Shown in pieces: positions 22,642 through 57,491 of a stretch of 64,000 bases of DNA (positions within the stretch are counted from its first letter, which is position 1; each line of letters opens with the position of its first letter). Under the pieces are notes generated by a model. The model was not told where the DNA came from and did not search any database. It saw only the letters and a program-made list of their open reading frames with translations. The position numbers were made by a program, and so were the translations under genes. The stretch lies in the sequence record OP380601.1. The stretch is one strand, 5' to 3'.

Positions 22642-22673
22642 TGTATATAGGTATTTAGGTTCTGTGTTATAAT
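22642..22673 (+). promoter_or_regulatory. nrdA promoter TGTATATAG-N14-TGT-TATAAT (middle-like class variant)
   Basis: Extended -10; upstream 9-mer matches TGTTCATAG at 7 of 9 positions. Confidence 0.65.
22652..22658 (-). promoter_or_regulatory. Putative late promoter CTAAATA for the endonuclease gene
   Basis: 34 nt upstream of the ATG at 22618. Confidence 0.55.
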
Positions 22674-22705
22674 GAACGAAAGGAAAATAAAGGAAATAAT
22701 AAGTA

Positions 22706-24958
22706 ATGATTAACACCGTTTTGAAGTCGTCCGGTATAACCGAAGAATTTTCATTCGATAAAATTTTCAAAGTTGTTGACTTTGCATGTCAAGGGTTAGA
22801 GGCAGATCCTCATGCTATTCTTGAAGCAGCAAAACCCGCAATTATGGAAGGTATGAGCACCAAAGATATCCAAAAGTTGGTTATCAAAGCAGCAGTAGAC
22901 CTAATATCTGTTGATGAGCCTGATTATCAATATGTCGCCGGTCGATTGACTATGTACGCTTTGCGTAAGCAGGTTTACAATCAGTTCGATCCTCCACATA
23001 TTTATGATCATGTTAAAGGTTTGGTTGCTAGTGGTCACTATGATCGAGATCTGATATATAAATATTCTGAGAAAGAATATGAAATTCTACAAGGTATTAT
23101 TGACCATACTCGCGATATGAATTTCACATATGCGGGTGCGATGCAGTATAAAGAAAAATATCTAGTAAAAGACCGGTCTAATGGTACAATTTACGAAACT
23201 CCACAGTTTGCATATATGTTACAAGCGATGTGTCTACATCAAGAAGAAGATGTTTCAAAACGTTTGGAATATGTTATCGATTTTTATAATGCCGCTAGTA
23301 ATTTCGAAATATCACTACCTACTCCAATTCTTTCTGGTGTAAGAACTCCAACTCGTCAATTTAGCTCATGCGTTAAAATTGAATCTGGTGACTCTCTTGA
23401 ATCTATCGGAGAAACATCAAAAGCTATAATGAAATATATTTCTCGCCGTGCCGGTATCGGTATTAATGGTGGTGCCATTCGTGCTGAAGGGTCTAGGATC
23501 CGTTCTGGTGAAGTTTCTCACACTGGTGTTATTCCATTCTGGAAACATTTTACTACCGGTGTTAAAAGTTGTAGCCAAGGCGGTGTTCGTGGTGGTAGTG
23601 GTAATATTAACTATCCTATGTGGCATTTGGAAGTAGAAAAGCTGTTGGTATTGAAAAATAATAAAGGTACTGAAGAAACCCGTATCCGTAATATTGATTA
23701 TACTGTACATATTAATAAGTTCTTTATTGAAAGGCTTAAAGAAGATGGCTATATCACACTGTTTAGCCCAGATATAGATAACGGTCTTCTATATAAAGAT
23801 TTTTATGATTCTGATAGTTCCAAGTTTATAGAGCGTTATAAAAAGCTTGAAATGAATCATGTTATCCGTAAGAAGAGAATTAAAGCAGCCGATCTGTTTA
23901 CAACTATGTTGACTGAAAGGGCTGGTACTGGTCGAATTTATGCGATGTTTGTTGATAACGTAAACAAACAGACTCCGTATATCGAACCAATTAAAATGAC
24001 GAATCTATGTGTTGAGATTAATCTTCCGACCTACCCGATGGCAGATAAAGATGAAGAGATCGCACTGTGTACCTTGAGCGCAATCAATCTGGGTAAAATA
24101 AAATCTACATCAGATTATATTCGTCTCAGTCGGATTATTGTTCGAGCACTAGATAACCTACTTGATTATCAAGATTATCCAGTGAAAGCCGCTGAGAAAG
24201 CAAAGAAGCGCCGTTCTCTTGGTATTGGTGTTGTTAACCTAGCTTATTTCTTGGCTAAAAACTTCGTCAATTATAATAGTCCTGAAGCGTTGGCTCTAGT
24301 ACATGAACATTTCGAAGCTATCCAATTCTCCCATATCAAGGCGTCTATGGAATTAGCTAAAGAGCGTGGTGCTAGTGAATGGCATGACCGTACAAAATGG
24401 TCTAAAGGTCTGTTGCCGATTGATTGGTATAACAAGAATGTCGATCTGTTGACTCCAAACGTCCTGAAACAGGACTGGGAATGGCTCCGTACCGAGATCC
24501 TTAAGTATGGTCTTCGTAACGATACCCTTACCGCTCAGATGCCGTCAGAAAGCAGCTCACAGCTTCTTAACGCAACTAACGGCGTAGAACCGGTTCGTGC
24601 TCTACTGTCAACCAAAGCGTCAAAAGATGGTGCGTTTAATCAGCTTGTTCCTGATGTTGATATTCTTGCTGATGAATATCAAACTCTTTGGGCTATGGTA
24701 CGTGAAAACGGAATGACTGGTTATCTTTCAATATGTGCAGTAATTCAGAAATTCTTTGATCAGGGAATCAGTGTAAACACTAGCTATATTCCTCAAAGTT
24801 ATAAGTCTGGCAAAGTTCCGGTTAGTGTCATGCTAAAGGATCTTGTATTTGCTCAGAAATATGGATTGAAGGCAATGTATTATCACAATACCCGTGATGG
24901 TAATGAGTCTGATATCGAAATGGTTAAGGAAGCAGATTGCGCAGGCTGTTCTGTATAA
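22706..24958 (+). CDS. nrdA: Aerobic ribonucleotide reductase alpha subunit
   Basis: ATP cone, SSCV, TNLCVEI, QMPSESSSQ, C-terminal CAGC. Confidence 0.98.
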   Translation: MINTVLKSSGITEEFSFDKIFKVVDFACQGLEADPHAILEAAKPAIMEGMSTKDIQKLVIKAAVDLISVDEPDYQYVAGRLTMYALRKQVYNQFDPPHIYDHVKGLVASGHYDRDLIYKYSEKEYEILQGIIDHTRDMNFTYAGAMQYKEKYLVKDRSNGTIYETPQFAYMLQAMCLHQEEDVSKRLEYVIDFYNAASNFEISLPTPILSGVRTPTRQFSSCVKIESGDSLESIGETSKAIMKYISRRAGIGINGGAIRAEGSRIRSGEVSHTGVIPFWKHFTTGVKSCSQGGVRGGSGNINYPMWHLEVEKLLVLKNNKGTEETRIRNIDYTVHINKFFIERLKEDGYITLFSPDIDNGLLYKDFYDSDSSKFIERYKKLEMNHVIRKKRIKAADLFTTMLTERAGTGRIYAMFVDNVNKQTPYIEPIKMTNLCVEINLPTYPMADKDEEIALCTLSAINLGKIKSTSDYIRLSRIIVRALDNLLDYQDYPVKAAEKAKKRRSLGIGVVNLAYFLAKNFVNYNSPEALALVHEHFEAIQFSHIKASMELAKERGASEWHDRTKWSKGLLPIDWYNKNVDLLTPNVLKQDWEWLRTEILKYGLRNDTLTAQMPSESSSQLLNATNGVEPVRALLSTKASKDGAFNQLVPDVDILADEYQTLWAMVRENGMTGYLSICAVIQKFFDQGISVNTSYIPQSYKSGKVPVSVMLKDLVFAQKYGLKAMYYHNTRDGNESDIEMVKEADCAGCSV

Positions 24959-24965
24959 AATAAGC

Positions 24966-24985
24966 GGGGGAGTAAAATCCCCCAT
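24966..24985 (+). repeat. Hairpin GGGGGAGTAAAATCCCCCAT, identical to the minus-strand copy around 7806-7825
   Basis: Direct comparison of the two sites. Confidence 0.75.
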
Positions 24986-25013
24986 TCTCATGCATTAAAG
25001 GAATCTATACCAA

Positions 25014-26144: not shown

Positions 26145-26154
26145 TTTTATCATG

Positions 26155-26174
26155 AAGGAACCTACGGGTTCCTT
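26155..26174 (+). terminator. Terminator after nrdB
   Basis: AAGGAACC-TACG-GGTTCCTT followed by TATTTATTT. Confidence 0.7.
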
Positions 26175-26195
26175 TATTTATTTGGAGAAGTTGAA

Positions 26196-28037
26196 ATGGT
26201 AAGTAATACACATCTTTATAATGAAGTTTGTGATATCGTAGATGATAAAAACGATTCCCTATCTAAAGAAAACGCGAATAAAGATTCTAAAGTAATTCCT
26301 ACAAAACGCGATATGCTCGCTTCCGCTATATCTAAAGAATATGCTGGTAAATTTATTTCCCAAGATATTCTTTCAGCTCACTATTCCGGTATTATCCATT
26401 TTCATGATCTTGGATATAGCCCCCTACTACCTATGACTAATTGTTGTTTGGTTAATGTATCTGATATGTTGAAAAATGGGTTCGTTATGTCATCCGCCCA
26501 TATTACACAACCAACTAATGTTCAGACTGCATCTAATATTATTTCCCAAATTCTTATTAATGTTTCAAATCATCAATATGGTGGAACCACTGTAGGTGAT
26601 CTTGATGTTGTTCTGGCTCCATATGTTAAGATGAGCTATGATAAACTTATATCAGAAGCCCGTTATTTTAAAATCCCAGACGTTGAATCGTATGCAAATA
26701 TTAAAATTCGTAAAATGGTGTATGATTCAATCCAAACGCTTGAGTATCAATTGAACTCATTAACTACAGGTCAAGGTCAAACTCCGTTCACAACCGTTAC
26801 ATTTGGTATTGGTTCCAGTCCAGAAGCTAAACTAGTTCAAGAAATGATCTTGCGTGTTCGTATTGATGGTCTTGGTGAAGATAAAGAAACCGCCGTATTT
26901 CCTAAACTTGTATTCACCCTCAAAGATGGTCTTAATCTGAATCCATGGGATCCACATTATGATATAAAACAACTTGCTCTTGAGTGTTCGTCTAAGCGTA
27001 TATATCCGGATATTATGAGTTATGATCAGGTTGTAAAGGTTACTGGTTCTTATAAGTCACCCATGGGTTGTCGCTCATTCTTGGGTAGATGGGAGAATGA
27101 AGCCGGTGAAGAAATTCATGATGGTCGTCAGAATTTGGGGGTTATCACTCTAAATCTCCCGAGAATTGCACTTGATTGTGGCGGTGATAAGCAAAACTTC
27201 ATGGCTTTACTGACAGAACGAATGGAAATAGTCAGGAATGGACTTATGCAGCGCATAGAGAGATTCCGAGGAATAAAGGCATCAGTTGCACCTATCCTAT
27301 ACATGCATGGCGCTATGGCACGTTTAAACGCCGATGATGATATTATGCAGTTGTTTGAAAATGGTAGGGCTAGTGTATCTTGTGGATATATTGGATTGCA
27401 CGAAGTATGCCAGATTATAAAATTTGATGATGAATCTCATATATTTGAAAATTCAGAAAAACAAGAATTTGCTCTTGCGGTATTAAGAAAGATGAAATCC
27501 ATTGTTGATGTATGGACAGAAGATACTGGGTTTTCATTCTCTCTATATGCAACTCCGTCCGAATCACTATGTGAGAGATTCTGCAATATCGATAGCAAAC
27601 TATATAACAATCCTGTACATGAAAAAGGATATTATCAGAATAGTTTCCATCTAGATGTAGAGTATAATTGTGACCCATACGAGAAGATTGATTTTGAAAG
27701 ACAATTTATAAAATATAGTACGGGTGGATTTATCTCTTATGGGGAATTCCCAGATGTAAAAAATAATCTTAAAGCCCTTGAAGATGTATGGGATTACGCT
27801 TACAAAACAACCCCATACTATGGTTCAAATATCCCAGTTGATAAATGTTTAGTATGTGGCTATAATGGGGAAACCGTTCCTACAAGTAAAGGTTATGAGT
27901 GCCCTTCTTGTGGAAACCACGATCAGAAAAAGCTACACGTAAGGCGTAGAGTGTGTGGTTATATCGGTGCGTTGGATGTAAGACCATTCAATGACGGAAA
28001 ACATAATGAGTCTATTCGTAGAGTAAAACACCTATGA
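26196..28037 (+). CDS. nrdD: Anaerobic (class III) ribonucleotide reductase, no intron
   Basis: TNCC, PMGCRSFL, C-terminal CxxC pairs and RVCGY glycyl-radical motif. Confidence 0.97.
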   Translation: MVSNTHLYNEVCDIVDDKNDSLSKENANKDSKVIPTKRDMLASAISKEYAGKFISQDILSAHYSGIIHFHDLGYSPLLPMTNCCLVNVSDMLKNGFVMSSAHITQPTNVQTASNIISQILINVSNHQYGGTTVGDLDVVLAPYVKMSYDKLISEARYFKIPDVESYANIKIRKMVYDSIQTLEYQLNSLTTGQGQTPFTTVTFGIGSSPEAKLVQEMILRVRIDGLGEDKETAVFPKLVFTLKDGLNLNPWDPHYDIKQLALECSSKRIYPDIMSYDQVVKVTGSYKSPMGCRSFLGRWENEAGEEIHDGRQNLGVITLNLPRIALDCGGDKQNFMALLTERMEIVRNGLMQRIERFRGIKASVAPILYMHGAMARLNADDDIMQLFENGRASVSCGYIGLHEVCQIIKFDDESHIFENSEKQEFALAVLRKMKSIVDVWTEDTGFSFSLYATPSESLCERFCNIDSKLYNNPVHEKGYYQNSFHLDVEYNCDPYEKIDFERQFIKYSTGGFISYGEFPDVKNNLKALEDVWDYAYKTTPYYGSNIPVDKCLVCGYNGETVPTSKGYECPSCGNHDQKKLHVRRRVCGYIGALDVRPFNDGKHNESIRRVKHL

Positions 28038-28504: not shown

Positions 28505-28505
28505 A

Positions 28506-28868: not shown

Positions 28869-28878
28869 GGAAAAATAA

Positions 28879-30447: not shown

Positions 30448-31879
30448 AGTTTTAACCTCAGTTCCTGGTAGCGGTAAAACTAAAGCGATTTTAAAACATG
30501 TGGGTAGGAATAAAAAGCCTACCATCATAGCTTCTATTTCTTGTCAGTTGTCTAAGCAGTCATTTGATTTTTATACCATGACTCTTGGATATACTGACGC
30601 TATTGTTATTGATACAGATAATATAAAAAGAAAGGCATCAGTTTTTGAATCGATTAAAGATGCTATTGGAAACCATCGGGTAATTTTTATTACTCACTCA
30701 GCACTAATGAACTTCCCATATTTTGATATGTTTGAGGGCCATGAACTTTATATTGATGAAGTCCCCGACATGGTAGACCTTCGTCAAATTCAGTTCAAAA
30801 CTAATATTGAAGTCGTTTCGAAATATTGTGAAATCTCAGAAAAGGGCCGTATGGTTCTAATTGAGAAGAACAGAAAACAACTAGAAGATATTGCAAAAGA
30901 TGGATTGTATAATCTAGATGTGGTTTCTAACAGTGTATTCCCTCTAGTAAAAGCACTACTGGTGGGGATCCCTGTAGTAGTTAAAGAGAATTGTGCGTAT
31001 TTTGTTGAAGATATGAGTACCCAGTCTTGGAACATGTTTTCTAAAATAACAATTGCTTGTGCGAATTTTAGTGAAACTTTCACTGGAACGGTATTAAAGG
31101 AATATTCCGGATGGGAGTTTGTAGAAAGCCCGTTGGTATCCCGTTTGGATTTTAGAAATTACAAGAATACGCAACGTATCGAGATTGTTCCTGTATATGA
31201 TGGGAATTGGTCTAGGTATGCAGCAGATACCGAAATAGAAGGCGAAAGTGTTTACAATAAAGTCAAAGATTTGGTATTGAATATTGTTGGTAATGTGAAT
31301 TATATATATACAACAAACTCTTATCGTGGACCTTTGACCGGTGGTAGTCGTATCCCATATAACCCACATGGGATGAACAATTATATGAACTTTACAACCG
31401 CAGTTGCGTTGTTCTCATATAACCCAAGTCCATGGCAATTGGAACTATTAAGATCCCTCAGTTATAACCAAGGACTTGATGTAGACCGCTTGACCAATGC
31501 GTTTCTGGTATCTAAGTATCTAGAACCGGCTTTCCAGTTATGTTTACGTACCGATATCCGTAATAATAAAAGTATGTCGATGGTTCGTCTAATTGTTCCA
31601 GATCTTAGAGTTGCAAATTACCTAAAAGATAAATATCTTCCTGATGCAAAAATTGATTATTCATTAATGATCGACTCGACAAAGGAAAGTAAACCTAGAA
31701 AGAAAGAAACTGTTCCTCGGGTTAGAAAAGAAAGTTTCAAGTCTATGTTTAATCTTGATAATAAAGAGCAATCTGCATTGTCTTATCATCAGAAAAAGAT
31801 AGGTAAGAAATATTCCATACTTGAACCTAGTGATATTGTGGAGGTAAGAGAATGGATAACTACAAGAAGAAAAGTATAA
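30431..31879 (+). CDS. P-loop NTPase / SF2-like helicase of unknown function
   Basis: Walker A SVPGSGKT, Walker B LYIDEVP, FQLCLRTDIR (motif VI-like). Confidence 0.75.
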   Translation: MGLKVEVLTSVPGSGKTKAILKHVGRNKKPTIIASISCQLSKQSFDFYTMTLGYTDAIVIDTDNIKRKASVFESIKDAIGNHRVIFITHSALMNFPYFDMFEGHELYIDEVPDMVDLRQIQFKTNIEVVSKYCEISEKGRMVLIEKNRKQLEDIAKDGLYNLDVVSNSVFPLVKALLVGIPVVVKENCAYFVEDMSTQSWNMFSKITIACANFSETFTGTVLKEYSGWEFVESPLVSRLDFRNYKNTQRIEIVPVYDGNWSRYAADTEIEGESVYNKVKDLVLNIVGNVNYIYTTNSYRGPLTGGSRIPYNPHGMNNYMNFTTAVALFSYNPSPWQLELLRSLSYNQGLDVDRLTNAFLVSKYLEPAFQLCLRTDIRNNKSMSMVRLIVPDLRVANYLKDKYLPDAKIDYSLMIDSTKESKPRKKETVPRVRKESFKSMFNLDNKEQSALSYHQKKIGKKYSILEPSDIVEVREWITTRRKV

Positions 31880-31904
31880 GGAATAGGTGTCTTTGTGTTA
31901 TAAT
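31873..31904 (+). promoter_or_regulatory. Gene 55 promoter AGTATAAGG-N14-TGT-TATAAT (middle-like class variant)
   Basis: Extended -10 TGT-TATAAT 25 nt before the ATG. Confidence 0.6.
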
Positions 31905-39475: not shown

Positions 39476-39847
39476 ATGATTCGAATTGGTTTGTATAACC
39501 CACAAGATTTTTTAAAGGTTCGGGAAACTTTGACCCGCATTGGTATTGCTAATCGCGAAACTAAACATATTTGGCAAAGCTGTCATATCATCCAGAAAAA
39601 TGGATTTTATTATGTGGCTCACTTTAAAGAACTTCTGAGGCGAGATGGTAGAGACGTTGTTATGTCTCAAGAGGATGTAGATCGCTGTTATGATATCGCG
39701 TATCTGCTTGAGGATTGGGATTTGTGTTCTGTAATTGATACTATGGAACGACCTAACCGATTTGAGTTCCACGTTATCTCTCACAAAGAGAAATCTGAAT
39801 GGATCCACAAGAGCAAATACATTTTCAAGAAAAATGTTCATAGCTGA
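39476..39847 (+). CDS. regA: Translational repressor RegA
   Basis: DFLKVRETLTRIGIAN, QSCHI, HFKELL. Confidence 0.97.
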   Translation: MIRIGLYNPQDFLKVRETLTRIGIANRETKHIWQSCHIIQKNGFYYVAHFKELLRRDGRDVVMSQEDVDRCYDIAYLLEDWDLCSVIDTMERPNRFEFHVISHKEKSEWIHKSKYIFKKNVHS

Positions 39848-39866
39848 TCCATTTGTTTGTTAGAAT
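39835..39866 (+). promoter_or_regulatory. Gene 43 promoter TGTTCATAG-N14-TGT-TAGAAT
   Basis: Member of the repeated promoter class. Confidence 0.7.
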
Positions 39867-39878
39867 GATATAACACAT

Positions 39879-39900
39879 TGGGGGATTATTATATCCCCCA
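39879..39900 (+). promoter_or_regulatory. Leader hairpin upstream of the gene 43 SD (candidate autogenous translational operator)
   Basis: TGGGGGAT-TATTAT-ATCCCCCA; T4 gp43 binds a hairpin at this position. Confidence 0.6.
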
Positions 39901-39919: not shown

Positions 39920-41443
39920 ATGAATTTTTACACTAACGTATGGATGGATGGAAACACCATCTACGATAGATATTTTGACTCAAATGGTAACGATAAAATA
40001 AGAAAGGTTCGGTATTCGCCAACTCTGTACCGTCATGTTGGAAACCATATAGAAACTAAGTTCAAAGATATATATGATCGAAAATGCTTACCTAAGACTC
40101 TTGAATCCATTGGTGAAGCCAGAAAATGGTTTAAAGAAATGCAGTCTATGGATAAAGAAGTATTGGGTATGGATAACTACACTTTCCAATATATTTCTGA
40201 TACGTATGGTGCTAATGCCCAATATGATTATTCTATGCTCGATATTATGTTTTTGGATATTGAGGTCCCAACTGATGGACCTTTCCCAGACACCACTAAT
40301 TGTGCATATGAAATAGATACTATCCAGATTTATAGCACCAAGATGAACAAATACTTTATCTGGACAACCAGAGAATGGGATTGTAATAAATCGATTCTAG
40401 ATAAAGAAGTTTTGGATCATGTTGAATATCATCATAATGGTTCAGAAAAAGAAATCCTTATTCGTTTTTTACAATTCTTTACAGAAAATACTCCACATTA
40501 TGTTAGTGGTTGGAACTCAGAAGGGTTTGATATTCCGTACATTGCCAGACGAATTAAAAAAATATTGGGTGATAAATTCCTCAATAAACTGAGTCCATTC
40601 GGTACTGTAAATGAAATCATTACCAAAGATGATAACGATGATGAAGTTATTACTTACGATATTACTGGTGTTAACTGTATTGACTTCATGGCAGCATATA
40701 AGAAATTTACATTCACAACCAGACCAAACTATAAACTAGATACTATCGCAGAAGCTGAGTTGGGTATTAATAAAGTAGAAATGACTCATCGGACGTATTT
40801 GGATTTCGCTACAAAAGATCCACAAACATATATTGATTACTCTATTCGAGACGTTGAGATTATCAAAAACCTTGAGATTCGACTGAGTTTGATTTATCTA
40901 ATTGCTTCTGTATCTTATTATGCTGGTGTAAATGCTGCTGACGTTTTCAGTCCTTTGAAGACTTGGGACGCAATCATTTATAACAGTCTATTAGAACAAG
41001 GTATTATCATTCCTGAGAATAAACATGCACAACGGGCTAAGTTCGCAGGTGCGTATGTTAAAGACCCGATTCCGGGGATGTATCAGTGGCTCCTTTCGTT
41101 CGACTTGACCTCACTGTATCCGCATATCATCATGGGAACGAATATCTCCCCAGAAACGTTAGTGGACCAAATCGATATTCCAAGGATCTTGGTTAAAGAC
41201 CGTATGGTTCCGGATATCGATGGTGTTGGTTTGGTAAATGGTACTTATAACGTACCGCACGAAGGTAAATATTCGTTTGCAGCAAATGGTGTTCGGTATC
41301 GTACCGATATGCGGGGATTCCTTCCTATTGAGGTTGAAAAGGTATTTAAACAGCGTAAGGCTGCAAAGACAGACGAATTTAGAGCGGATGCCCTAGCAAC
41401 CCGAGCCGCTAAGATCCTAGCTATGCGTCATCATAAGGAATAA
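39920..41443 (+). CDS. gp43A: DNA polymerase N-terminal subunit (exonuclease, palm motif A)
   Basis: FLDIEV, GWNSEGFDIPY, SFDLTSLYPHII; ends within the fingers region. Confidence 0.96.
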   Translation: MNFYTNVWMDGNTIYDRYFDSNGNDKIRKVRYSPTLYRHVGNHIETKFKDIYDRKCLPKTLESIGEARKWFKEMQSMDKEVLGMDNYTFQYISDTYGANAQYDYSMLDIMFLDIEVPTDGPFPDTTNCAYEIDTIQIYSTKMNKYFIWTTREWDCNKSILDKEVLDHVEYHHNGSEKEILIRFLQFFTENTPHYVSGWNSEGFDIPYIARRIKKILGDKFLNKLSPFGTVNEIITKDDNDDEVITYDITGVNCIDFMAAYKKFTFTTRPNYKLDTIAEAELGINKVEMTHRTYLDFATKDPQTYIDYSIRDVEIIKNLEIRLSLIYLIASVSYYAGVNAADVFSPLKTWDAIIYNSLLEQGIIIPENKHAQRAKFAGAYVKDPIPGMYQWLLSFDLTSLYPHIIMGTNISPETLVDQIDIPRILVKDRMVPDIDGVGLVNGTYNVPHEGKYSFAANGVRYRTDMRGFLPIEVEKVFKQRKAAKTDEFRADALATRAAKILAMRHHKE

Positions 41444-42620: not shown

Positions 42621-42652
42621 TGTTCATGGGTCATTATATTTCGTGGTATAAT
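42621..42652 (+). promoter_or_regulatory. Promoter TGTTCATGG-N14-TGG-TATAAT
   Basis: Repeated class; within a perfect 13-bp inverted repeat at 42626-42659. Confidence 0.7.
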
Positions 42653-42674
42653 GACCCATACTAAATGAGGAAAT

Positions 42675-43094
42675 GTGATGTTAGACCAAGAAAGTAATAA
42701 AGATAAACTAGAAGTTTTCATTTCTGAAGATAAACAATATAAAAAAATAAAGGCTCATATAAATGATGAGATCTGTTCATTAATAAAAAATGATTTGTTT
42801 AATAGAGAAAATAAAGATACCAATTCTTACTCCGAAGAATATATCACTTCACTTCGGGAAGTGATAGAAAAATATTATGATAAAAATTTAATAGATTCAT
42901 TTAGTATTACTACTAATGATCTTAGAGATGTAGTTAAGATTTTATTTGAAACTAAAGTTCGTAGTTTCCCTATATTTGTAACTAGTGATTCTACCCATAT
43001 TCGTCTCAATTTAGAACAACCTACAACCGAAGCACTTAAAAATAATAAGTATCTAATAAAATTACATAAAACTCTCGAATCCGAATTCAAATAA
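42675..43094 (+). CDS. Hypothetical protein
   Basis: GAGG SD; 139 aa; AT-rich. Confidence 0.75.
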   Translation: MMLDQESNKDKLEVFISEDKQYKKIKAHINDEICSLIKNDLFNRENKDTNSYSEEYITSLREVIEKYYDKNLIDSFSITTNDLRDVVKILFETKVRSFPIFVTSDSTHIRLNLEQPTTEALKNNKYLIKLHKTLESEFK

Positions 43095-44264: not shown

Positions 44265-44696
44265 ATGACTAATGAACAAATAGAATTATTTATTGACTTT
44301 AGTAAAGATTATGGTTATTATCTAACTCATATGGGTTTTGAAGATACACCAACTTCTCTGGCTGTATATGAAGGGTATTTCAATTCTATGGGAGGTAAGA
44401 CAACCCTTATAATGGAGCCGAATCGCGGTAAAATATTTTCGGAGATAAAATATCAAATTAACGAACTTTGTAGAATTCTAAATTATACATGTATTATAGA
44501 AAATAATATAAAATCCTTGAAACTAGAAAATCGCTCTTACTTTAAAGTAATAAAAACTCCTCTTGATCTGAAAGGGTGGGGTTTTAGTCATCTTTTAGTT
44601 CAGGATGGATTTCAAGACCAAAAATATTTTTCCGAATATTTTTACCCTATAATTGCCGCTAGTAGATCTAAGGTAAGTATCATTATCACACCCTAA
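44265..44696 (+). CDS. Hypothetical protein
   Basis: 143-aa ORF. Confidence 0.7.
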   Translation: MTNEQIELFIDFSKDYGYYLTHMGFEDTPTSLAVYEGYFNSMGGKTTLIMEPNRGKIFSEIKYQINELCRILNYTCIIENNIKSLKLENRSYFKVIKTPLDLKGWGFSHLLVQDGFQDQKYFSEYFYPIIAASRSKVSIIITP

Positions 44697-44699
44697 ATA
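44693..44699 (+). promoter_or_regulatory. Putative late promoter CTAAATA for gene 40
   Basis: 37 nt before the gp40 ATG. Confidence 0.6.
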
Positions 44700-45020: not shown

Positions 45021-45545
45021 ATGGTAGATCAAGTAACGAGTCGTGTAGATCATAAACAAGGTAGAGACGTTAACGGTTGGCCCTTCGATCAGGTATTCAC
45101 TTGGTATCAACCACACGAAACAACCGGTGTGATGTATCCAGTACAACAGACTATTTATGAACGATTGCAATTAATCTATACAGAACCTACTTATTTGCCG
45201 GGTATTAATGACGGTGAATTTGTTAAAGTCATTGGATTAAATGATACCGAGTGGGATGATCCTAAATTCGACCCCGGCGAAGTTTATGAAATATATCTAG
45301 AAGACGGTCAGAAGTTTATTTGTTGCTGGAATCATAAAACGATTCTACTCAATCCCCAGCGCGAAACTCAAGCCTATTATGCCGGTTCTTATATTGGTTA
45401 TAATGGGGTTCCTGTTAGGCGTATTAAGAGAGTTAAACTTACTCCTAAATTTAAGCCAGATTTTTGGATGAATGTTATTACAGAAAATGATCAGCCTTAT
45501 CGGGGTCCCGGTAATATCATGCACGTTTCCGCAAAATTAGTATAA
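45021..45545 (+). CDS. Hypothetical protein
   Basis: 174-aa ORF with GAGG SD. Confidence 0.75.
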   Translation: MVDQVTSRVDHKQGRDVNGWPFDQVFTWYQPHETTGVMYPVQQTIYERLQLIYTEPTYLPGINDGEFVKVIGLNDTEWDDPKFDPGEVYEIYLEDGQKFICCWNHKTILLNPQRETQAYYAGSYIGYNGVPVRRIKRVKLTPKFKPDFWMNVITENDQPYRGPGNIMHVSAKLV

Positions 45546-45552: not shown

Positions 45553-45582
45553 GTTTACCCACGACCCAAGATGTGATATCAT
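45553..45582 (+). promoter_or_regulatory. T4-early-type promoter GTTTACC-17-(TGA)TATCAT for gene 41, inside a terminator-like hairpin
   Basis: GTTTAC -35, extended -10; stem CCCACGACC/GGTCGTGGG then T-tract. Confidence 0.7.
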
Positions 45583-47748: not shown

Positions 47749-47794
47749 ATTTTTATGGGGAACCTGTGTTATACTAACGGAATAAGGGGGATTT

Positions 47795-48841
47795 ATGAAT
47801 ATTATTTCTATAGAAAGAGATTTCGCAACTCGTCTATCATATCGAATGGAGATGTGTACTGATCATGCCCGTGGTGTTGAGGTTAGGTATAACTTCAAAT
47901 GTCCACTATGTGGGGATGGTGATTCCGGTTATAAAACCCGTGGATGGTTATACGAGGATGACGGACACGTTAGATTTGGTTGCTTCAACTGTGGTCGAAA
48001 CTTTAAGCTAACAAACTATCTATACGACCATGAACCGGAAATGTATAGAGAATTTGCAAAAGAAAAGTTTTCAAATAAAGATGATAGTTGGGTGTCTGTT
48101 GAGAAACCAAAACCGAAACCAGTTGAAATCGTAAAAAAGAATGTGATACCATATTCGACTTGTATTGCAGATCTTCCAGAAAATCATCCCGCTGTTAAAT
48201 GGGTTGCCAATCGAAAGATCCCTAAACATCAATATCATCTATTTTTCTTCACAGACGAATGGAAGAAACTAGCAAATAATATAAAACCAGAAACATACTT
48301 GTATGATGACAAAAAAGAGTATAGACTAGTTATCCCGATCTATAATAAGGATGGAACTTATTCCTCATTGCAAGGTCGCGCACTAGATCCGAATGTAGAT
48401 AAAAGCCGCCGATACCTTACTATCAAAGCCGATGATAAGGCTTCTAAGGTTTATGGAATGGAAAGAGCGGATCCCAACAAAACCGTATGGATGTTAGAGG
48501 GTCCAATCGATAGTGTTTTCATTCCTAATGCATGTGCTATCGTAGGTGGTGTTATGGCACTTGAGGATGCACCATTTCCAGAAAAACGTGTTTGGGTACT
48601 TGACAAGGAAGACCGCTCTTTTGATACAATCAAACGGATAGAAAATTTGGTTAATGCTGGTGAACGGGTTGTCATATGGGACGAATGCCCATGGCAATCT
48701 AAAGATATAAATGATATGGTAAAAAATGACGGCGCTTGTATTGAAGATATCATTTCTTATCTAAAAGAACATACATACTATGGTCTACGGGCGGAACTTG
48801 CACTTAGCAAGTGGCGCAGATTTGGACATAAGAGGATTTAG
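47795..48841 (+). CDS. gp61: DNA primase
   Basis: CPLCGD...CFNC zinc finger, RLVIPI, QGRAL, LEGPIDS, KDINDM. Confidence 0.97.
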   Translation: MNIISIERDFATRLSYRMEMCTDHARGVEVRYNFKCPLCGDGDSGYKTRGWLYEDDGHVRFGCFNCGRNFKLTNYLYDHEPEMYREFAKEKFSNKDDSWVSVEKPKPKPVEIVKKNVIPYSTCIADLPENHPAVKWVANRKIPKHQYHLFFFTDEWKKLANNIKPETYLYDDKKEYRLVIPIYNKDGTYSSLQGRALDPNVDKSRRYLTIKADDKASKVYGMERADPNKTVWMLEGPIDSVFIPNACAIVGGVMALEDAPFPEKRVWVLDKEDRSFDTIKRIENLVNAGERVVIWDECPWQSKDINDMVKNDGACIEDIISYLKEHTYYGLRAELALSKWRRFGHKRI

Positions 48842-50357: not shown

Positions 50358-50359
50358 AA

Positions 50360-50950: not shown

Positions 50951-52954
50951 ATGAAAGATCAAGAAGGTCGCATTTTAAGTGACTATGAACATATATTTAT
51001 GTCTTCTGATATGTATGTCGGTTCTTTGGCAGAAGAGACACATCAGATATTGGAAAATGGTAAGTTTGTAAGCAAGAGCTATATTCCGGGTCTTGTTAAA
51101 ATCATTGATGAAATCATTGATAACTCCGTTGATGAAGCGATCCGAACCGATTTTAAATATGCAAATAAAATTGATATCGTAGTTGATGATCAAACAAACC
51201 AAGTAACTATATCAGATAACGGTAGAGGTATACCGCAATATGATGTAACCACACCAGAGGGAGATGTAATTCCATACCCCCAAGCGTGTTATACTCGGGC
51301 ACGGGCTGGGGGTAACTTCGTAAAAGAACGTAAAGGTATTGGTAAAAATGGTGTTGGTTCAGTTCTGACTAACCTATATTCTACTATGTTTCGAGCAACC
51401 ACATGTGATGGTAAAAATACAGTTACTATCTATTGTACCCAAAATGCCGAACATCAATCTTACACAAAGAAAAAAGGTGGCACTCAAGGTACTACTGTTG
51501 AGTTTATCCCAGATTTACTTGACAAGTTTGGTATATTTGGTGGTATACCTAGCGATATTGTTGATGTTATTAAATCTCGCGTTGAAATTTTGTCTGTATT
51601 GTTTCCACAAGTTAAGTTCACGTTCAATAAAAAGAAAGTGGATTCCAAATTCAAGAAATTTGCTAGTGATTTTGGTGATCCGGTAATCTTTGAGAATGAT
51701 AAATGTTCATTCTTCATAGGTACTTCTGACGAATTCCGTCAGTTGAGTTATGTGAATGGTGTACATACTAAGCAAGGCGGAAACCACGTAGAATATTTGA
51801 TAAACGGTTTGTGTGATGAACTGACTCCAATGATTAAACGAAAGTTTAAGGTGGAGATCAATAAATCACGAATTAAAGAAAATACATTGATTTTTATGTC
51901 TCTTCGTGGATTTGAAGGTGCTAAGTTTGACGGTCAGACAAAAGAAAGACTGAGTAATTCCAATGGTCAAATAAAGGATCATTGTGATATTGATCTAAAA
52001 GCAATTGCAAAAAAGATGATATCCAACGATTCAGTCATTATGCCTATTGTTGAAAGTGCAATTGCAAAACGGGATGCCGTAGAAAAAGCTCTCGCAACAA
52101 AAGCACAAAAGAAGGCGCTCACATCCAACGTTCCAAAACATATTCAGGCTAACAAATATGGGAAGAAAGGATTTGAAACCGTTCTATTCTTAACTGAGGG
52201 TGATTCCGCATTAGGATTCCTTGGTGCAACCCGAGATCATGACACACAAGGTGGCTTCCCTCTTCGTGGTAAAATGTTGTCTGTTCACAAGATATCAGAC
52301 AAAACCAAAGTATTGAAAAATGCAGAGATCACCAATATCATTTCCATTTTGGGAATAACTCTTGATGATACTAAAGAATTGCCGAGTGGTGACTTTTATC
52401 GAAATGGTGATCTTGTTGTTGCTGAAAACGATGAAATGATTGTTAATGGTAAATGGGTGCAAACCCGAGATATTATTACAGGCAATGATTGGACTCGCGA
52501 ACTTAAACCTGATATGGTTCATTATAGAAATCAAACCAACGTAAGACGTAATACCGCAGCGAATTATGACTATGTTTCTATTCTTGTTGATGCGGATCCG
52601 GATGGTCGTGGACACATCAGCAACCTGATCATTTCATTGTTCCATAAGTATTGGAAACACTACATTGACCAAGGACGTTTGTTGGTATGTCGTACCCCTG
52701 AGTATATCAGTAGAAAGGGTAAGGATGTTGTTTGGTGTTATGATACCGTGGAATTTAACAATAAGAAATTTGCGGGTACTGGTTGGAAACATGAACATGT
52801 TAAGGGATTGGGGCAGTTGAACAAGGAAGATTACAAGAAGTGTATCCGAGATCCTTACATGGAGCGGGTTCGTATAGATGAGGCTGCTGGGGAATCTTTA
52901 GAGATGTTCTTTGGTAATGAATCTGACTTGCGTAAAGCTTGGATGGATGAGTAA
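50951..52954 (+). CDS. gp39+60: Type II topoisomerase large subunit, genes 39 and 60 fused
   Basis: EIIDNSVDE, DNGRGIP, GKNGVG, TEGDSA, PLRGK, DADPDG, KGLG. Confidence 0.96.
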   Translation: MKDQEGRILSDYEHIFMSSDMYVGSLAEETHQILENGKFVSKSYIPGLVKIIDEIIDNSVDEAIRTDFKYANKIDIVVDDQTNQVTISDNGRGIPQYDVTTPEGDVIPYPQACYTRARAGGNFVKERKGIGKNGVGSVLTNLYSTMFRATTCDGKNTVTIYCTQNAEHQSYTKKKGGTQGTTVEFIPDLLDKFGIFGGIPSDIVDVIKSRVEILSVLFPQVKFTFNKKKVDSKFKKFASDFGDPVIFENDKCSFFIGTSDEFRQLSYVNGVHTKQGGNHVEYLINGLCDELTPMIKRKFKVEINKSRIKENTLIFMSLRGFEGAKFDGQTKERLSNSNGQIKDHCDIDLKAIAKKMISNDSVIMPIVESAIAKRDAVEKALATKAQKKALTSNVPKHIQANKYGKKGFETVLFLTEGDSALGFLGATRDHDTQGGFPLRGKMLSVHKISDKTKVLKNAEITNIISILGITLDDTKELPSGDFYRNGDLVVAENDEMIVNGKWVQTRDIITGNDWTRELKPDMVHYRNQTNVRRNTAANYDYVSILVDADPDGRGHISNLIISLFHKYWKHYIDQGRLLVCRTPEYISRKGKDVVWCYDTVEFNNKKFAGTGWKHEHVKGLGQLNKEDYKKCIRDPYMERVRIDEAAGESLEMFFGNESDLRKAWMDE

Positions 52955-52959
52955 AAATA

Positions 52960-52982
52960 AAAGGGAACAAATAGTTCCCTTT
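52960..52982 (+). terminator. Terminator
   Basis: AAAGGGAAC-AAATA-GTTCCCTTT then T-rich. Confidence 0.85.
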
Positions 52983-53027
52983 TTCTTTTTCTTGTGTATA
53001 ATAGATAAAAATTATGAGGCAATTGAT

Positions 53028-53619: not shown

Positions 53620-53622
53620 ATT

Positions 53623-53895
53623 ATGAAAAAGTATCGTTTTAAAAGTGAAAATCATAAACAAGAATTCGCAAGTGATTGTTTTAATCACGCGGGGCAAGAA
53701 GATCTTAAAACATATAATCAAGCCGTAATCGAATTTCTAGATGCAGAAGGTCTTGACGAATTTTATATTGACAATGAAGATGATGAAGCATGGATTATGG
53801 TTGATGGTTCCCCCGCAATTATTATGCATTTTGATGCAGCCCTACTTTTTCATCTATACCAAGAAGATATCGAAGAATATATGGTAGAAGTTTAA
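53623..53895 (+). CDS. Small acidic protein (KYRFKSE family)
   Basis: 90-aa ORF; tandem paralog. Confidence 0.8.
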   Translation: MKKYRFKSENHKQEFASDCFNHAGQEDLKTYNQAVIEFLDAEGLDEFYIDNEDDEAWIMVDGSPAIIMHFDAALLFHLYQEDIEEYMVEV

Positions 53896-53920
53896 TTTTG
53901 GGTTATGAGGATTTTATAAT

Positions 53921-56155
53921 ATGAAGATGGTTGAAATGAAGACACCAATTTATGGTGATACTCAAGGCGAAGTGAAACAGTTTGGTATGGTGCAATCTTC
54001 AAAGGCATATACCATACTGTCTTCCGGATTGTATAAGTTCAAGATCCGCGCATTTATTCGAGAGCTGAGTTGTAACGCAATCGACGGTCATATTGCACTT
54101 GCATTGCAGGGCAAACCGGTACACAAACAATTTGATGTAGAGTTGCCTTCAGAATTGAGCCTTCAATGGCGTTTGCGGGATTATGGCATTGGTCTTTCTC
54201 CGGAAGGTATTGATGCTCTGTTTACAACTTATTTTGCATCAACCAAAGAAGAATCAGATGATTTTATCGGTGCTTTTGGTTTGGGTTCAAAAAGTCCATT
54301 CTGTTACACCACAACCTTTACAGTTACATCTTGGTTTGATGGGGTAAAGACGGTTTACAGTATATATATGAATAACGGGATCCCTGCCTGTGTTCCTGTC
54401 CATAGCTGTCCATCAGATGAGCATACAGGTATTGAAATTGTCGTTCCTGTAGATCAGGAAGATATTTCAGATATTCAAGAAGAAAGCCGTTTTGTTTATT
54501 ACACGTTCGATAGAAACGAATATTTCCCTAATTTCGTTGGGACTGACTTGGGTCTATGTACATATAAAGATGAACAAAAGAATATCCCACGTCTGTATGA
54601 CCACGGCACATATGCAATTATGGGGGGTGTATCGTATTCAATCCCCAGAAAGTTTATCGATGGTACAGTTTGTGAGATCTATTTCCCTAAAAACTCAACC
54701 AAGTTCATTGAATTCCCTATGGGTTCTCTTAATCCTCTTCCTAACCGTGAAGAATTGAGTTTGGATGAGCATACAATTACAACCCTTAAGAAGTATTTTA
54801 AATCACACGCTGATAAGGTATGGGACGATGTAACAATCGCAATTGCAGGATGTAAGGATGCTCGGGAGAAGATAAATAAGATCAAAGACCTTACTTTCGG
54901 TACATCGATTTTTAATTTTGTAAGCAATACGATCTATCATAATAAAAAGACTCTGAAAGAATGGGATATTTTTTATGACAATATTGAATTCGATCAATCG
55001 GTTATGAAATATCTAAAATATATTGAAGATAATCTAAAAGATCGTTCTATTGCACATATGAATGGATTTTCTAATACAAGTTATAAGATTTTTGATCGTA
55101 CTCGTTTATCTCGTTATTACTCAAATTATAAGGTGAAATTGGATTCAAAATTTGATCCAAAATACCATACTACCAAGTACAATATTCCATTGTTGATTGT
55201 TGATAACTCAGTAAAGGGATACAAAAAGAACATCCGTTCACTTCAAGAACATGGAATTATCCCTAAGAATAGTCACGGTGTTATGATGTTTAACCAGTCG
55301 GGTATGCGCTGGAATAAAAAACATGATAAAATGATTCGTGATGTTATGATCTCCATTGCAAAGCGTTATCACAAAGACGATGTATGCGTGTATGACGTTG
55401 AGAAGCTTTGGGGTATACATGGACCTGTAATTCAAGAGAAACGTGAACTAGCCCGTAAAGAAGCCCGTAAAAACGCGCCCAGATCCAATAGGGTTCGTGA
55501 TGCTGGACATTCCGTTGTGGTGTTCTACTCTGATAAAACTAATCATGAAAATATCTACGCAAAAGATGTGGATTCGTTTGATGGGTTTTATGTTATAGTC
55601 AAGGGTGGATGTTATTATGACGATGATGATACACAATTCGATCAGATTCTTGAAAACTCAAGCATGTGTAGCATGGCGGATTGGTTAGGAAAACCGGTTT
55701 ATCGTATTCCTTCAGCACTCAAAAAACGTGCAGAAAAGAATCCAAACCTTTCCCGTTTGGTTTATAATGACATTAAAGAAACTACGTATAAAAATTCGTT
55801 TCATAAATTGACTTCAGATACAGTTGGTTTTAATGTACATCGCCGATTGGTTGATAATATTTTGTTGTCGGACCCAATTAGAAAGCGTTATGATTTAGTT
55901 TCTAAAAAGTCTTGGGATGAAGATACATATCGAGAGTATATGAACTTGCTTTCTGTTACTTCTTACAACGAAAACGAGGAACTGAAGAAGTATATTTCAT
56001 CTTTTGAAGATGCTGCCGTTGAGAAATACAAAACCAATCTTGAAATATTCAAGAAAGATCATCTGGTTGTGTATACACTTCTTCATTCTGTAAAAGATAT
56101 TTCTATTTCTGATGAAGTTTGGAAATCTATTAATAAAATGGTTACTGGGGCTTAA
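53921..56155 (+). CDS. rIIA: rIIA protein
   Basis: LSSGLYKFKIRAFIRELSCNAID, DYGIGL, YFASTK, GAFGLGSKSPF (GHKL-like). Confidence 0.95.
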   Translation: MKMVEMKTPIYGDTQGEVKQFGMVQSSKAYTILSSGLYKFKIRAFIRELSCNAIDGHIALALQGKPVHKQFDVELPSELSLQWRLRDYGIGLSPEGIDALFTTYFASTKEESDDFIGAFGLGSKSPFCYTTTFTVTSWFDGVKTVYSIYMNNGIPACVPVHSCPSDEHTGIEIVVPVDQEDISDIQEESRFVYYTFDRNEYFPNFVGTDLGLCTYKDEQKNIPRLYDHGTYAIMGGVSYSIPRKFIDGTVCEIYFPKNSTKFIEFPMGSLNPLPNREELSLDEHTITTLKKYFKSHADKVWDDVTIAIAGCKDAREKINKIKDLTFGTSIFNFVSNTIYHNKKTLKEWDIFYDNIEFDQSVMKYLKYIEDNLKDRSIAHMNGFSNTSYKIFDRTRLSRYYSNYKVKLDSKFDPKYHTTKYNIPLLIVDNSVKGYKKNIRSLQEHGIIPKNSHGVMMFNQSGMRWNKKHDKMIRDVMISIAKRYHKDDVCVYDVEKLWGIHGPVIQEKRELARKEARKNAPRSNRVRDAGHSVVVFYSDKTNHENIYAKDVDSFDGFYVIVKGGCYYDDDDTQFDQILENSSMCSMADWLGKPVYRIPSALKKRAEKNPNLSRLVYNDIKETTYKNSFHKLTSDTVGFNVHRRLVDNILLSDPIRKRYDLVSKKSWDEDTYREYMNLLSVTSYNENEELKKYISSFEDAAVEKYKTNLEIFKKDHLVVYTLLHSVKDISISDEVWKSINKMVTGA

Positions 56156-56179
56156 TGCCCCTTTAAATGAGGATATAAA

Positions 56180-57415
56180 ATGAAAACTAATTATGAAAAG
56201 ATATTTGATCTTATATATGATGGTATATATGACGTAACAGGAATTAAAGTTTCATCCCGAGATATGTCAAAATCTCTGGGTAGCATTGGATTGGATGGAT
56301 TGGATGTAGTTGAATTAATCATGTATATTGAAGAAAGTCTTGATATAGACTTTCAATATATAGATTATTTTGATGATTATGACGCGATTTCAAATCTTAA
56401 TATTCAGCAACTCGCCAATCTGGTGGTTAAATATTATGATACACAACCCGTAGAACATGTTGATATTAAATTTGTTGTTGAAACGGAAAGTCGTGAAGAT
56501 AAGGTTATTCGGCTACATAAAACCGGTCTTAGTCAAAATGAAATCTCTAGACAAATTGCGGTCCCCCGATCTACTGTTGGTGATATTGTTCGGCGTTATA
56601 AAGGGATTCAGAAGCCTAAGAAAGTACACGTTAAAACTGTTGATGTGGTAGAAGAAAAGAAATCCGAGGTTTCTTGGAATGCAGGATTCAATTTCATTAA
56701 CTGTTATATTGATGGCGAAGTTATTACGGCAGATCGTAAACATCCAGCATTTGATGAAGCATTTAAAATTTTGATAGAAACGAATGATGTTATTCGTGCT
56801 GCTAGTATGTTGTCTATCAAAAAGGCAATTGAAACTTATGTAAAAGGTGATATCAAAATCGTTGGTAATACCCTGACATATAAAGATGTTGTTCTAGATA
56901 CTAACATGACTCGGCGTGTAGTTGAGATGTGGAAAACCGGTGAAGATATCGATGCTATGATCAACTTCCTTACCCGTCTGGTTAAGAACCCGCGCCGTGA
57001 GGCAGTATATGAGCTGTTTGATTTCCTGAAACACAACGATATTAAGATCACCGAAGATGGATTCTTCCTAGCGTATAAGCGCATTCGTGACGATTATACT
57101 GATATCTGGACTGGTACTTTCGATAACTCGATTGGTGCGAGCCCTCGTATGGAACCTTTCGAAGTAGATGCAGATCGAAAGAATGAGTGTTCCTGTGGTT
57201 TGCACGTTGCATCGGCTGGATACATTCCATATTATTCCCGTAGAGAAAATGACCGTGTTATCATGGTAAAGGTTGACCCTGCTAATGTTGTTGCTATCCC
57301 AGAGGGATATGACCATGCAAAACTCAGGACTTGGACTTATGATGTAATTAAGGAAGTTACATATGAATTCAAAAATGGATCTTTCAAAAATCAGTCTATT
57401 GGATTCACGTATTAA
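56180..57415 (+). CDS. rIIB: rIIB protein with N-terminal ACP-like domain and HTH
   Basis: WNAG, DRKHPAF, NPR..AV.EL.DFL, DGFFLAYKR, CSCGLHV, VKVDPANVVAIP. Confidence 0.93.
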   Translation: MKTNYEKIFDLIYDGIYDVTGIKVSSRDMSKSLGSIGLDGLDVVELIMYIEESLDIDFQYIDYFDDYDAISNLNIQQLANLVVKYYDTQPVEHVDIKFVVETESREDKVIRLHKTGLSQNEISRQIAVPRSTVGDIVRRYKGIQKPKKVHVKTVDVVEEKKSEVSWNAGFNFINCYIDGEVITADRKHPAFDEAFKILIETNDVIRAASMLSIKKAIETYVKGDIKIVGNTLTYKDVVLDTNMTRRVVEMWKTGEDIDAMINFLTRLVKNPRREAVYELFDFLKHNDIKITEDGFFLAYKRIRDDYTDIWTGTFDNSIGASPRMEPFEVDADRKNECSCGLHVASAGYIPYYSRRENDRVIMVKVDPANVVAIPEGYDHAKLRTWTYDVIKEVTYEFKNGSFKNQSIGFTY

Positions 57416-57417
57416 TT

Positions 57418-57439
57418 AAAGGGGATTAATTTCCCCTTT
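57418..57439 (+). terminator. Terminator after rIIB
   Basis: AAAGGGGA-TTAATT-TCCCCTTT-ATTTT. Confidence 0.75.
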
Positions 57440-57459
57440 ATTTTATGAGAAAAATACTT

Positions 57460-57491
57460 TGTTCATAGAAATGAGGACAATATGATATAAT
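57460..57491 (+). promoter_or_regulatory. Promoter TGTTCATAG-N14-TGA-TATAAT
   Basis: Repeated class. Confidence 0.7.

Follow-up and report, generated by a model that had tools for sequence, protein, structure and literature searches.

In the genome of Aeromonas phage avDM6, six promoters with an extended −10 element (TGn directly upstream of the −10 hexamer) share the word GTTCAT at one fixed upstream distance, and they make up a real, apparently undescribed promoter class. In a sister phage lineage, the orthologous promoters carry a different word, ATTAAG, at nearly the same place, and this concerted exchange points to a phage-encoded factor as the reader of the box. The DNA under study, hereafter called the window, is a stretch of 64 kb that equals bases 124001-188000 of the avDM6 record (OP380601.1, 233,966 bp) with 100% identity. 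The phage is T4-like and belongs to the phage 65 group (Straboviridae, Ishigurovirus). Its DNA is approximately 93% identical to that of phages 65 and 65.2 and approximately 74% identical to that of Aswh_1 and ZPAH1; further relatives are two CC2-like IMG/VR contigs. On its + strand, the window holds a cluster for replication and nucleotide metabolism (nrdA/B/D/G, 55, 47, 46, 45, 44, 62, regA, the split 43A/43B, uvsX, 40, 41, 61, dut, dexA, topoisomerase, rIIA and rIIB), after which an early arm of small open reading frames (ORFs) begins. Positions are those of the window unless they are marked as record positions.

Identification of the boxed promoters

The initial annotation of the window had reported five promoters with a common 9-mer and an extended −10. 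Every one of these sequences was recovered at its coordinates, and in all five TG stands directly upstream of a −10 hexamer with A at −11 and T at −7, as it does in all six sites of the strict set described below. The exact full pattern occurs three times in the window, upstream of gene 43, uvsX and an exonuclease gene. With up to three mismatches allowed, 6 matches were found compared to 1.32 expected, and none of 100 shuffles reached 6, which bears out the proposed enrichment over a shuffled background.

A motif-free scan of the whole genome for hexamers at a fixed distance upstream of TAnAAT ranked GTTCAT at offset 25 first, with 10 occurrences seen and 0.68 expected over the 233,966 bp. 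The spacing is sharp, as GTTCAT is found zero times or once at nearly all other offsets and at most four times at any of them. The composite GTTCAT-N16-TGnTAnAAT is present six times in the genome, with an analytic expectation of 0.057 (Poisson P ~4e-11); in local shuffles, it averaged 0.05 and never exceeded 2. When 2.9 million IMG/VR contigs were scanned for exact matches to the composite, three were found in phage 65, the only genome with more than one; the remaining matches were 15 singletons in unrelated contigs.

The six composite sites follow the consensus WGTTCATRR-N14-TGn-TAnAAT-G, with TGn and the G directly after the −10 in six of six. Four of them have TATAAT as the −10 hexamer, and the other two have TAGAAT and TACAAT. 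GTTCAT forms the conserved core; outside the window, all three sites carry A instead of T before the G, and A as the last letter. Flanks and spacers are unrelated among the six avDM6 sites. The box has no dyad symmetry, and the word is present in a single copy without a direct repeat at an 11-bp period.

Three of the boxed promoters lie in the window and three outside (Table 1). The box of gene 43A falls within the last codons of regA. The promoter beside inh is followed by more than 400 nt without an ORF and points antisense through a small ORF into the late gene inh; it is conserved in both lineages (Aswh_1 record ~114821-114850, − strand), and its product may be an antisense ('anti-late') RNA. 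Further matches at window 12552 (− strand; GTTCAT without TGn, the −10 overlapping the start codon of gene 33), at window 48005-48036 (− strand) and at record 26628 were left out of the set, being probably due to chance. A search of the literature found no paper on phage 65 group promoters.

Table 1. Promoters, leader structures and neighboring features; window positions unless marked as record.
Feature	Position (strand)	Sequence elements	Remark
Boxed promoter, gene 43A	39835..39866 (+)	box TGTTCATAG 39835-39843, core GTTCAT 39836-39841; TGT 39858-39860; −10 TAGAAT 39861-39866	predicted start near 39873
Boxed promoter, uvsX unit	42621..42652 (+)	box TGTTCATGG 42621-42629; TGG 42644-42646; −10 TATAAT 42647-42652	predicted start near 42659
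Boxed promoter, gene of 318-amino-acid helix-turn-helix (HTH) + RNase H-fold exonuclease (57522-58478)	57460..57491 (+)	box TGTTCATAG 57460-57468; TGA 57483-57485; −10 TATAAT 57486-57491	predicted start near 57498
Boxed promoter, gene 1 (deoxynucleoside monophosphate kinase)	record 75082 (−)		outside window
Boxed promoter, gp26 (baseplate hub)	record 78464 (−)		outside window
Boxed antisense promoter beside inh	record 121662 (+), span 121636-121667		outside window
nrdA promoter, TGn/−10 type	22642..22673 (+)	TGTTATAAT; −35-region word GTATAT	doubtful class member
Gene 55 promoter, TGn/−10 type	31873..31904 (+)	TGTTATAAT; GTATAA, 3/6 core mismatches	not a class member by sequence
Gene 41 promoter, TGn/−10 type	45553..45582 (+)	GTTTACC-N14-TGATATCAT	unboxed
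Primase (gene 61) promoter, TGn/−10 type	47767..47775 (+)	TGTTATACT	unboxed; Aswh_1 has TGATATAAT there
First canonical early-type promoter, right early arm	59370..59398 (+)	TTGATG-N17-TAGAAT	contrast case
Canonical early-type promoter	62543..62571 (+)	TTGACA-N17-GAGAAT; TGA at −15..−13	contrast case
Late-promoter-like motif	3210-3218 (+), 17453-17461 (+), 44691-44699 (+), 12209-12217 (−)	CCCTAAATA	
Hairpin, predicted 5' leader of gene 43A	39879..39900 (+)	TGGGGGATTATTATATCCCCCA	ahead of ribosome-binding site
Perfect palindrome at uvsX promoter	42628..42657 (+)	GGGTCATTATA-N8-TATAATGACCC	−18.4 kcal/mol, z −5.7
Terminator-like (intrinsic) hairpin after rIIB	57417..57440 (+)		just upstream of boxed promoter of exonuclease gene
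138-amino-acid ORF between uvsX promoter and uvsX	42678..43094 (+)		in avDM6 and phage 65; lineage-specific
Gene 1 leader hairpin	avDM6 record 75048-75100 (−); phage 65 L026:4950-5003; Aswh_1 L023:11750-11802		

Relation to the other promoter classes of the genome

Three kinds of promoters were found in the intergenic regions, namely early promoters, late promoters and promoters with TGn and a consensus −10. The early class has the form TTGACA-N17-(TGA)GATACT and comprises 29 sites with a 17-bp spacer, 27 of which are located in the two small-ORF arms (0-50 kb and 175-234 kb). The late class is defined by the motif CCCTAAATA upstream of structural genes. Promoters of the third kind lack TTGACA and precede replication-type genes; six of them are boxed, and those of nrdA, 55, 41, 61 and gp31 are unboxed. 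The boxed promoters are situated outside the early arms or at an arm edge, and they stand apart from the canonical early and late promoters, in line with the distinct class that had been proposed.

The promoters of nrdA and gene 55, which had been listed as variants of the motif, did not hold up in this role. Neither contains the core box, and both belong to the unboxed TGn/−10 group. Of the core, just the outer letters remain in the nrdA word GTATAT, and the corresponding promoter in Aswh_1 reads ATACAT..TGGTATAAT. At gene 55, Aswh_1 keeps TGATATAAT with the upstream word out of register.

Concerted switch of the box between phage lineages

Most phage 65 sites are uninformative because the DNA is nearly identical to that of avDM6; the gene 43A promoter is identical, and the promoter of the exonuclease gene is conserved. 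At gene 1, the region is 76% identical between the two phages and contains indels, yet it retains GTTCATAA, the distance of 19 nt and TGnTATAAT.

The orthologous promoters of Aswh_1 keep TGnTAtAAT but not GTTCAT. A motif-free scan of the Aswh_1 genome revealed TTAAG/ATTAAG four times at offset 23/24 upstream of TGn/−10, compared to 0.031-0.05 expected (P ~4e-8); the word is essentially absent at other offsets. The four sites are found upstream of uvsX, gene 1 and gp26 and beside inh, and are thus orthologs of avDM6 sites. Counted at its own offset, each word is confined to one genome (GTTCAT/ATTAAG 6/0 in avDM6 and 0/4 in Aswh_1), so the two are mutually exclusive. When the center letters were freed, GTnnAT peaked at offset 25 in avDM6 (9 sites; no more than 4 elsewhere) and ATnnAG at offset 24 in Aswh_1 (7 sites; no more than 4 elsewhere). 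All six Aswh_1 orthologs fit ATnnAG, including gene 43, with ATCTAG at the equivalent offset and TGTTATCAT, and the exonuclease gene, with ATACAG at the equivalent offset and TGTTATAAT, where the spacer GAAaTGAGGACA is conserved. The uvsX ortholog sites read AAAATTAAGT..TGATATAAT in Aswh_1 and ZPAH1 and AAATTAAAG or AAATTAAAA in the CC2-like contigs, which carry ATTAA(G/A) with unrelated spacers at both uvsX and gp26. The ATTAAG-type counterpart of GTTCATRR can be written as AATTAAGT.

Box type tracks the phage lineage, not the host species: on A. hydrophila, avDM6 has GTTCAT and ZPAH1 has ATTAAG, and on A. salmonicida the two words are found in phage 65 and Aswh_1, respectively. As a control, the word read by sigma70, TTGAC with a 17-bp spacer, predominates among the promoter words of avDM6 (29 sites) and Aswh_1 (23 sites) alike. 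Since the box follows the lineage and TTGACA is the same in both lineages, a phage-encoded factor, and not host sigma70, is most likely to read the box. A concerted and host-independent switch at six orthologous promoters makes a phage-encoded DNA-binding factor the simplest candidate reader, and it strengthens the original suggestion that something phage-specific recognizes the box. With regards to sampling, the databases hold three lineages only. Wider IMG/VR surveys with AsiA and UvsX led only to the same three genomes, and among the sequencing runs compared with the window, its sequence turned up in metagenome contigs only.

Comparison with known promoter types

With the −10 element at −12 to −7, the 9-mer box spans approximately −38 to −30 and is centered near −34. 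It ends 17 bp from the −10 hexamer (19 bp for the core GTTCAT), whereas the T4 MotA box, (a/t)(a/t)(a/t)TGCTTtA, lies 12±1 bp from the −10 and is centered at −30 (PMC2988021). The new box is thereby located half a helical turn upstream of the MotA-binding position. Since it sits in the sigma70 −35 register, it cannot be regarded as a mere respelling of the MotA box. The letters differ as well, as had been noted at the outset: the consensus is WGTTCATRR, and GCTT is present at the box position in none of the six sites.

Despite these differences, much of the layout is familiar from the T4 middle promoters driven by MotA and AsiA. In both systems, a phage word stands where the −35 would be, ahead of an excellent sigma70 −10 that often has TGn, and prereplicative genes follow; asiA is likewise present in the avDM6 genome. 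The T4 middle promoters have an excellent −10 (TAtaaT), with TGn in about half, and the six boxed sites have a −10 of this quality. The MotA dependence of T4 P43, PuvsX and P55, on which the initial annotation had drawn, was confirmed in Table 1 of PMC2988021, and P1 is likewise MotA-dependent (PMC2988021). The boxed set thus overlaps with the T4 MotA-dependent set at 43, uvsX and 1. Apart from the position, the differences concern the word (GTTCAT or ATTAAG instead of GCTT), which here switches between sister lineages, the lack of a MotA homolog in avDM6 and the number of sites, approximately 60 in T4 as compared to six here.

The boxed sites also resemble extended −10 promoters, with TG at −15/−14 and a −10 matching at least 5/6 positions at all sites. 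In T4, TGn/−10 promoters do not need sigma region 4, are immune to AsiA and tolerate a poor −35, and PrIIB2, a promoter of this type, is still stimulated by MotA/AsiA (PMC2988021). Ordinary extended −10 promoters have no conserved upstream word, in contrast to the fixed, lineage-covarying word at a fixed distance described here. T4-type early promoters (UP/−35/TGn/−10) share the TGn, and TG precedes the −10 in approximately half of the avDM6 early sites. However, the avDM6 early class differs from the boxed promoters by its canonical TTGACA, its 17-bp spacer, its weaker −10 (GATACT) and its identical type in both lineages. In terms of position, the box is comparable to the sites of PhoB at pho boxes or of lambda cI at PRM, activators that bind over or in place of the −35 and touch sigma region 4. 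These are regulators of the host or of temperate phages with repeated or dyad sites, whereas the box is single and asymmetric and belongs to a virulent T4-like phage.

Proposed mechanism and alternative explanations

The avDM6 genome encodes AsiA outside the window (record 51162-51455; PF09010 at 3.5e-19, 69 bits with a cut-off of 25). The claim that no motA lies in the window was upheld for the entire genome: tblastn with T4 MotA reached no better than E = 1; profile hidden Markov models (HMMs) of seven diverse MotA proteins, used whole and as separate N and C domains, were run against all six-frame ORFs, with 0.17, 0.037 and 0.22 as the best E values; and the highest hhalign probability among 336 proteins was 13%. 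Phage 65, Aeh1 and KVP40 also have asiA but no recognizable motA (PMC2988021, PMC1524935).

As AsiA is encoded by the phage, the likeliest mechanism would be functionally analogous to the sigma appropriation of T4. AsiA would remove sigma70 region 4 from the −35 DNA, as in T4, and the boxed promoters would remain active through TGn/−10. A lineage-specific phage protein other than MotA would then dock on the box at the vacated −35 position and stimulate or time the prereplicative genes 43, uvsX, 1 and the exonuclease gene; the same protein would also act on gp26 and on the RNA antisense to a late gene. We consider the chances of this mechanism to be about even. We infer from the sequences that a protein binds the box, that the phage encodes it, that it activates, that AsiA is needed and that the timing is middle. 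The proposed factor would provide the function of MotA without belonging to the MotA family. Because TGn with a consensus −10 probably fires without such a factor, the box may modulate or time transcription rather than be required for it. We also put forward, tentatively and with clearly less confidence, a second and independent sigma appropriation, in which a protein unrelated to MotA, or conceivably AsiA through its variable C-terminal half, would take up the −35 position on polymerase remodelled by AsiA and confer a new −35 specificity that differs between the sister lineages (GTTCAT or ATTAAG). If this were true for Aeh1- and KVP40-type phages as well, it would explain why asiA is kept without motA in many T4-like phages.

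Several observations weigh against the docking of a phage protein on the box. A promoter that combines TGn and a consensus −10 should be active unaided, which makes the box not obviously necessary, and the TTCATA of the box could pass as a weak −35 (4/6, 18-bp spacer). The set is small, with six sites per genome, and the three lineages available amount to one independent switch. Some orthologous sites deviate: the gp26 site of phage 65 is not exact (AGTCAT at offset 24, one base nearer to the −10), and in the CC2-like phages, gene 43 lacks an upstream promoter, while at gene 1 the box is out of register and TGn is missing. Furthermore, all searches combined (MotA, slot, Pfam, PHROGs) found no reader protein. 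In T4 and in Acinetobacter phage Meroveus, motA is located between gene 52 and asiA. The same slot in avDM6 was rejected as the source, with proteins of 141 and 149 amino acids that match membrane proteins only weakly, a 37-amino-acid DUF7230 protein and two proteins of 78 and 82 amino acids that are beta-rich or acidic. The HTH of the 65p438-type exonuclease protein, encoded beside a boxed promoter, is identical in both lineages and hence cannot explain the box switch. Finally, Pfam scans of ten basic diverged early proteins and 20 unknown window proteins, together with PHROGs scans of 10, yielded no transcription-factor family.

Alternatively, a phage-encoded repressor or shut-off factor could use the box as its operator and turn down, at a given time, this subset of self-sufficient TGn/−10 promoters, which escape AsiA. 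Such promoters need no −35 contact and are AsiA-immune in T4 (PMC2988021), the boxed promoters have unboxed TGn/−10 promoters beside them (nrdA, 55, 41, 61, gp31) and hence form a subset under additional control, and the lineage switch would suit any phage DNA binder, be it repressor or activator. However, the center near −34 is the classic position of an activator that replaces or touches sigma region 4, although repressors bind there too, the Pfam and PHROGs scans found no repressor-like HTH protein, and the box has no dyad symmetry. We therefore regard an operator as unlikely, if still worth keeping in mind. Less credible is that these are ordinary sigma70 promoters, constitutively early or delayed early and without any phage factor, in which host sigma70 region 4 reads the box as a weak −35. 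At sites whose box ends in A, TTCATA matches TTGACA at 4/6 positions with an 18-bp spacer, a generic promoter scanner lists two sites (39837-39866 and 57462-57491) as sigma70-like with TG, and TGn/−10 promoters tolerate a poor −35 (PMC2988021). Against this, the six sites share the non-consensus letters G-37, C-34 and T-32 in a genome with 29 uses of TTGACA, these letters are exchanged together in a sister lineage that infects the same host species, and the uvsX site, like that of gp26, offers only TTCATG (3/6 matches to TTGACA). Altogether, this explanation appears improbable.

The box might also be read by a host transcription factor, for instance a response regulator that replaces the −35 in the manner of PhoB. 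A position overlapping the −35 is typical of such activators, and TTCATA presumably bears some likeness to a pho half-site. However, the box tracks the phage lineage, with both types found on A. salmonicida as well as on A. hydrophila, and the single copy of the word lacks the direct repeat at an 11-bp period, which renders a host factor very unlikely. That the word has no function at all, being due to chance or a remnant of a duplicated promoter cassette, could be argued from the small set and from the repeated cassettes that do exist in the genome. This is close to refuted by the P values in avDM6 (~4e-11) and Aswh_1 (~4e-8), the unrelated flanks and spacers, the retention of the element through a region of 76% identity and the marking of the same six orthologous promoters in two lineages.

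Whether AsiA acts as an inhibitor only or with another partner in phages without MotA (phage 65, Aeh1, KVP40) has been a question since at least 2006-2010, and no middle-promoter consensus is known for phages with asiA but without motA (PMC1524935, PMC2988021). Our analysis supplies a concrete cis-element, a defined set of six promoters and a natural swap of specificity between sister lineages, with which the question of asiA without motA becomes directly testable. If a reader protein is found, it would represent a new phage route to reprogram the promoter recognition of host RNA polymerase, and the two lineages would provide a pair of orthogonal promoter/factor modules.

Leader structures and genes next to the boxed promoters

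The 138-amino-acid ORF between the boxed promoter at 42621 and uvsX is absent from Aswh_1, from the CC2-like phages and from the metagenomic runs X2, X3 and X4. In the X2 and X4 contigs, the sequence is kept up to 42660, which is joined to 43104 through 31-35 other letters. Since relatives without the small ORF thus join the promoter to uvsX, the 42621 site is the uvsX promoter and the ORF an insertion; the encoded protein has no significant Pfam family. The palindrome at this promoter begins right after the box, and its 3' arm contains the −10. Palindromes of different sequence, judged by eye, are present at the uvsX position in Aswh_1 and in one CC2-like contig.

A leader hairpin is also found at gene 1 in three lineages, each time with a different sequence. 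Folded as single sequences, the three leaders (avDM6, phage 65 and Aswh_1) reach −20.1, −16.1 and −16.5 kcal/mol, with z values of −4 to −5.8. The 5' arm starts right after the box, the loop contains the −10, and the 3' arm masks the Shine-Dalgarno sequence. Read-through RNA from the upstream late gene 3 would accordingly have a masked ribosome-binding site, and RNA started at the promoter would not. This design makes sense only if transcription starts there, which lends indirect support to the predicted start site. A similar arrangement is known from the transcript-specific translation of the T4 genes e, soc and 49, in which the ribosome-binding site is sequestered in read-through RNA and, as predicted for gene 1, only the promoter-proximal RNA has it free. 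The known T4 cases involve late promoters, whereas the gene 1 promoter is of the boxed TGn/−10 type. At gene 43A, phage 65 and metagenomic relatives show indels in the loop of the leader hairpin; the structure presumably serves as a leader or operator hairpin.

The exonuclease protein (57522-58478) matches RNase_H_2 at 1e-13, carries the note 'exonuclease domain' in phage 65 and is 81% identical between the lineages. It is composed of an N-terminal HTH (approximately residues 13-49, below the Pfam thresholds), an RNase H-fold domain and a C-terminal cysteine-rich stretch.

Further candidate proteins and observations

The 174-amino-acid protein encoded at 45021-45545 had been rated with fairly good confidence as a B3-like DNA binder in the atlas. 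HMMER found three orthologs only, and the AlphaFold2 model (predicted local distance difference test score 64.5) matches Hint/intein folds instead, including the gp41-1 intein. The gene lies just upstream of the helicase gene 41, and its product is 38% identical to that of Aswh_1, compared to a genome median of 63%. Going by the model, this could be a stand-alone Hint-like protein encoded beside a gene that is a classic host of inteins. DsbA was dismissed as a reader, being no outlier with 59% identity between the lineages, near the 63% median. Two MotA-sized basic orphans outside the window (record 12213-12845 and 27281-27892) matched no Pfam family, and an Rfam scan of the window gave no match.

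The late-promoter-like motif of this phage group, CCCTAAATA instead of the T4 sequence TATAAATA, precedes uvsW and gene 40 among others, in addition to structural genes located outside the window. Early promoters frequently occur within hairpins in which the spacer pairs with the −10 region (e.g., GAGTATCCCATTCGTGGGATACTC), as at 62543-62601 and at many early-arm sites, with further examples at record 17735-17798, 41296-41356 and 232234-232297. A recurring word (ATCGAAAC, GTCGAAAC or GTAGACA) follows approximately 10 nt downstream of these promoters. They resemble the promoter-stem-loop cassettes of other T4-like phages. Positions 62602-63111 encode a 169-amino-acid Alc-like protein (PF17527, 21.8 bits, below the cut-off of 25), whose Aswh_1 ortholog is 86% identical and annotated as an inhibitor of host transcription.

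The nrdA promoter region (22520-22790) is 99.3% identical between avDM6 and phage 65, as compared to approximately 93% elsewhere, and adjoins a homing endonuclease gene; a recent gene conversion is possible. Finally, an element of approximately 80 bp, TAGTTTCAAGTGyAATCAAAkTATAAAGTTCTATAATATATTAATAGAAACTyTATAATTAGAAAGTGTGAGT, has an internal palindrome and two TATAAT boxes and is present in at least seven copies in the genome, in both orientations. The window copy (21430-21520, core 21456-21483) adjoins a SegE-type GIY-YIG homing endonuclease gene (21722-22618, − strand; Pfam 7e-30), and other copies were found at record 8103+, 47187+, 78517-78672, 121514-121543 and 188350-. It could represent a mobile cassette with a regulatory role, or a repeat linked to homing.

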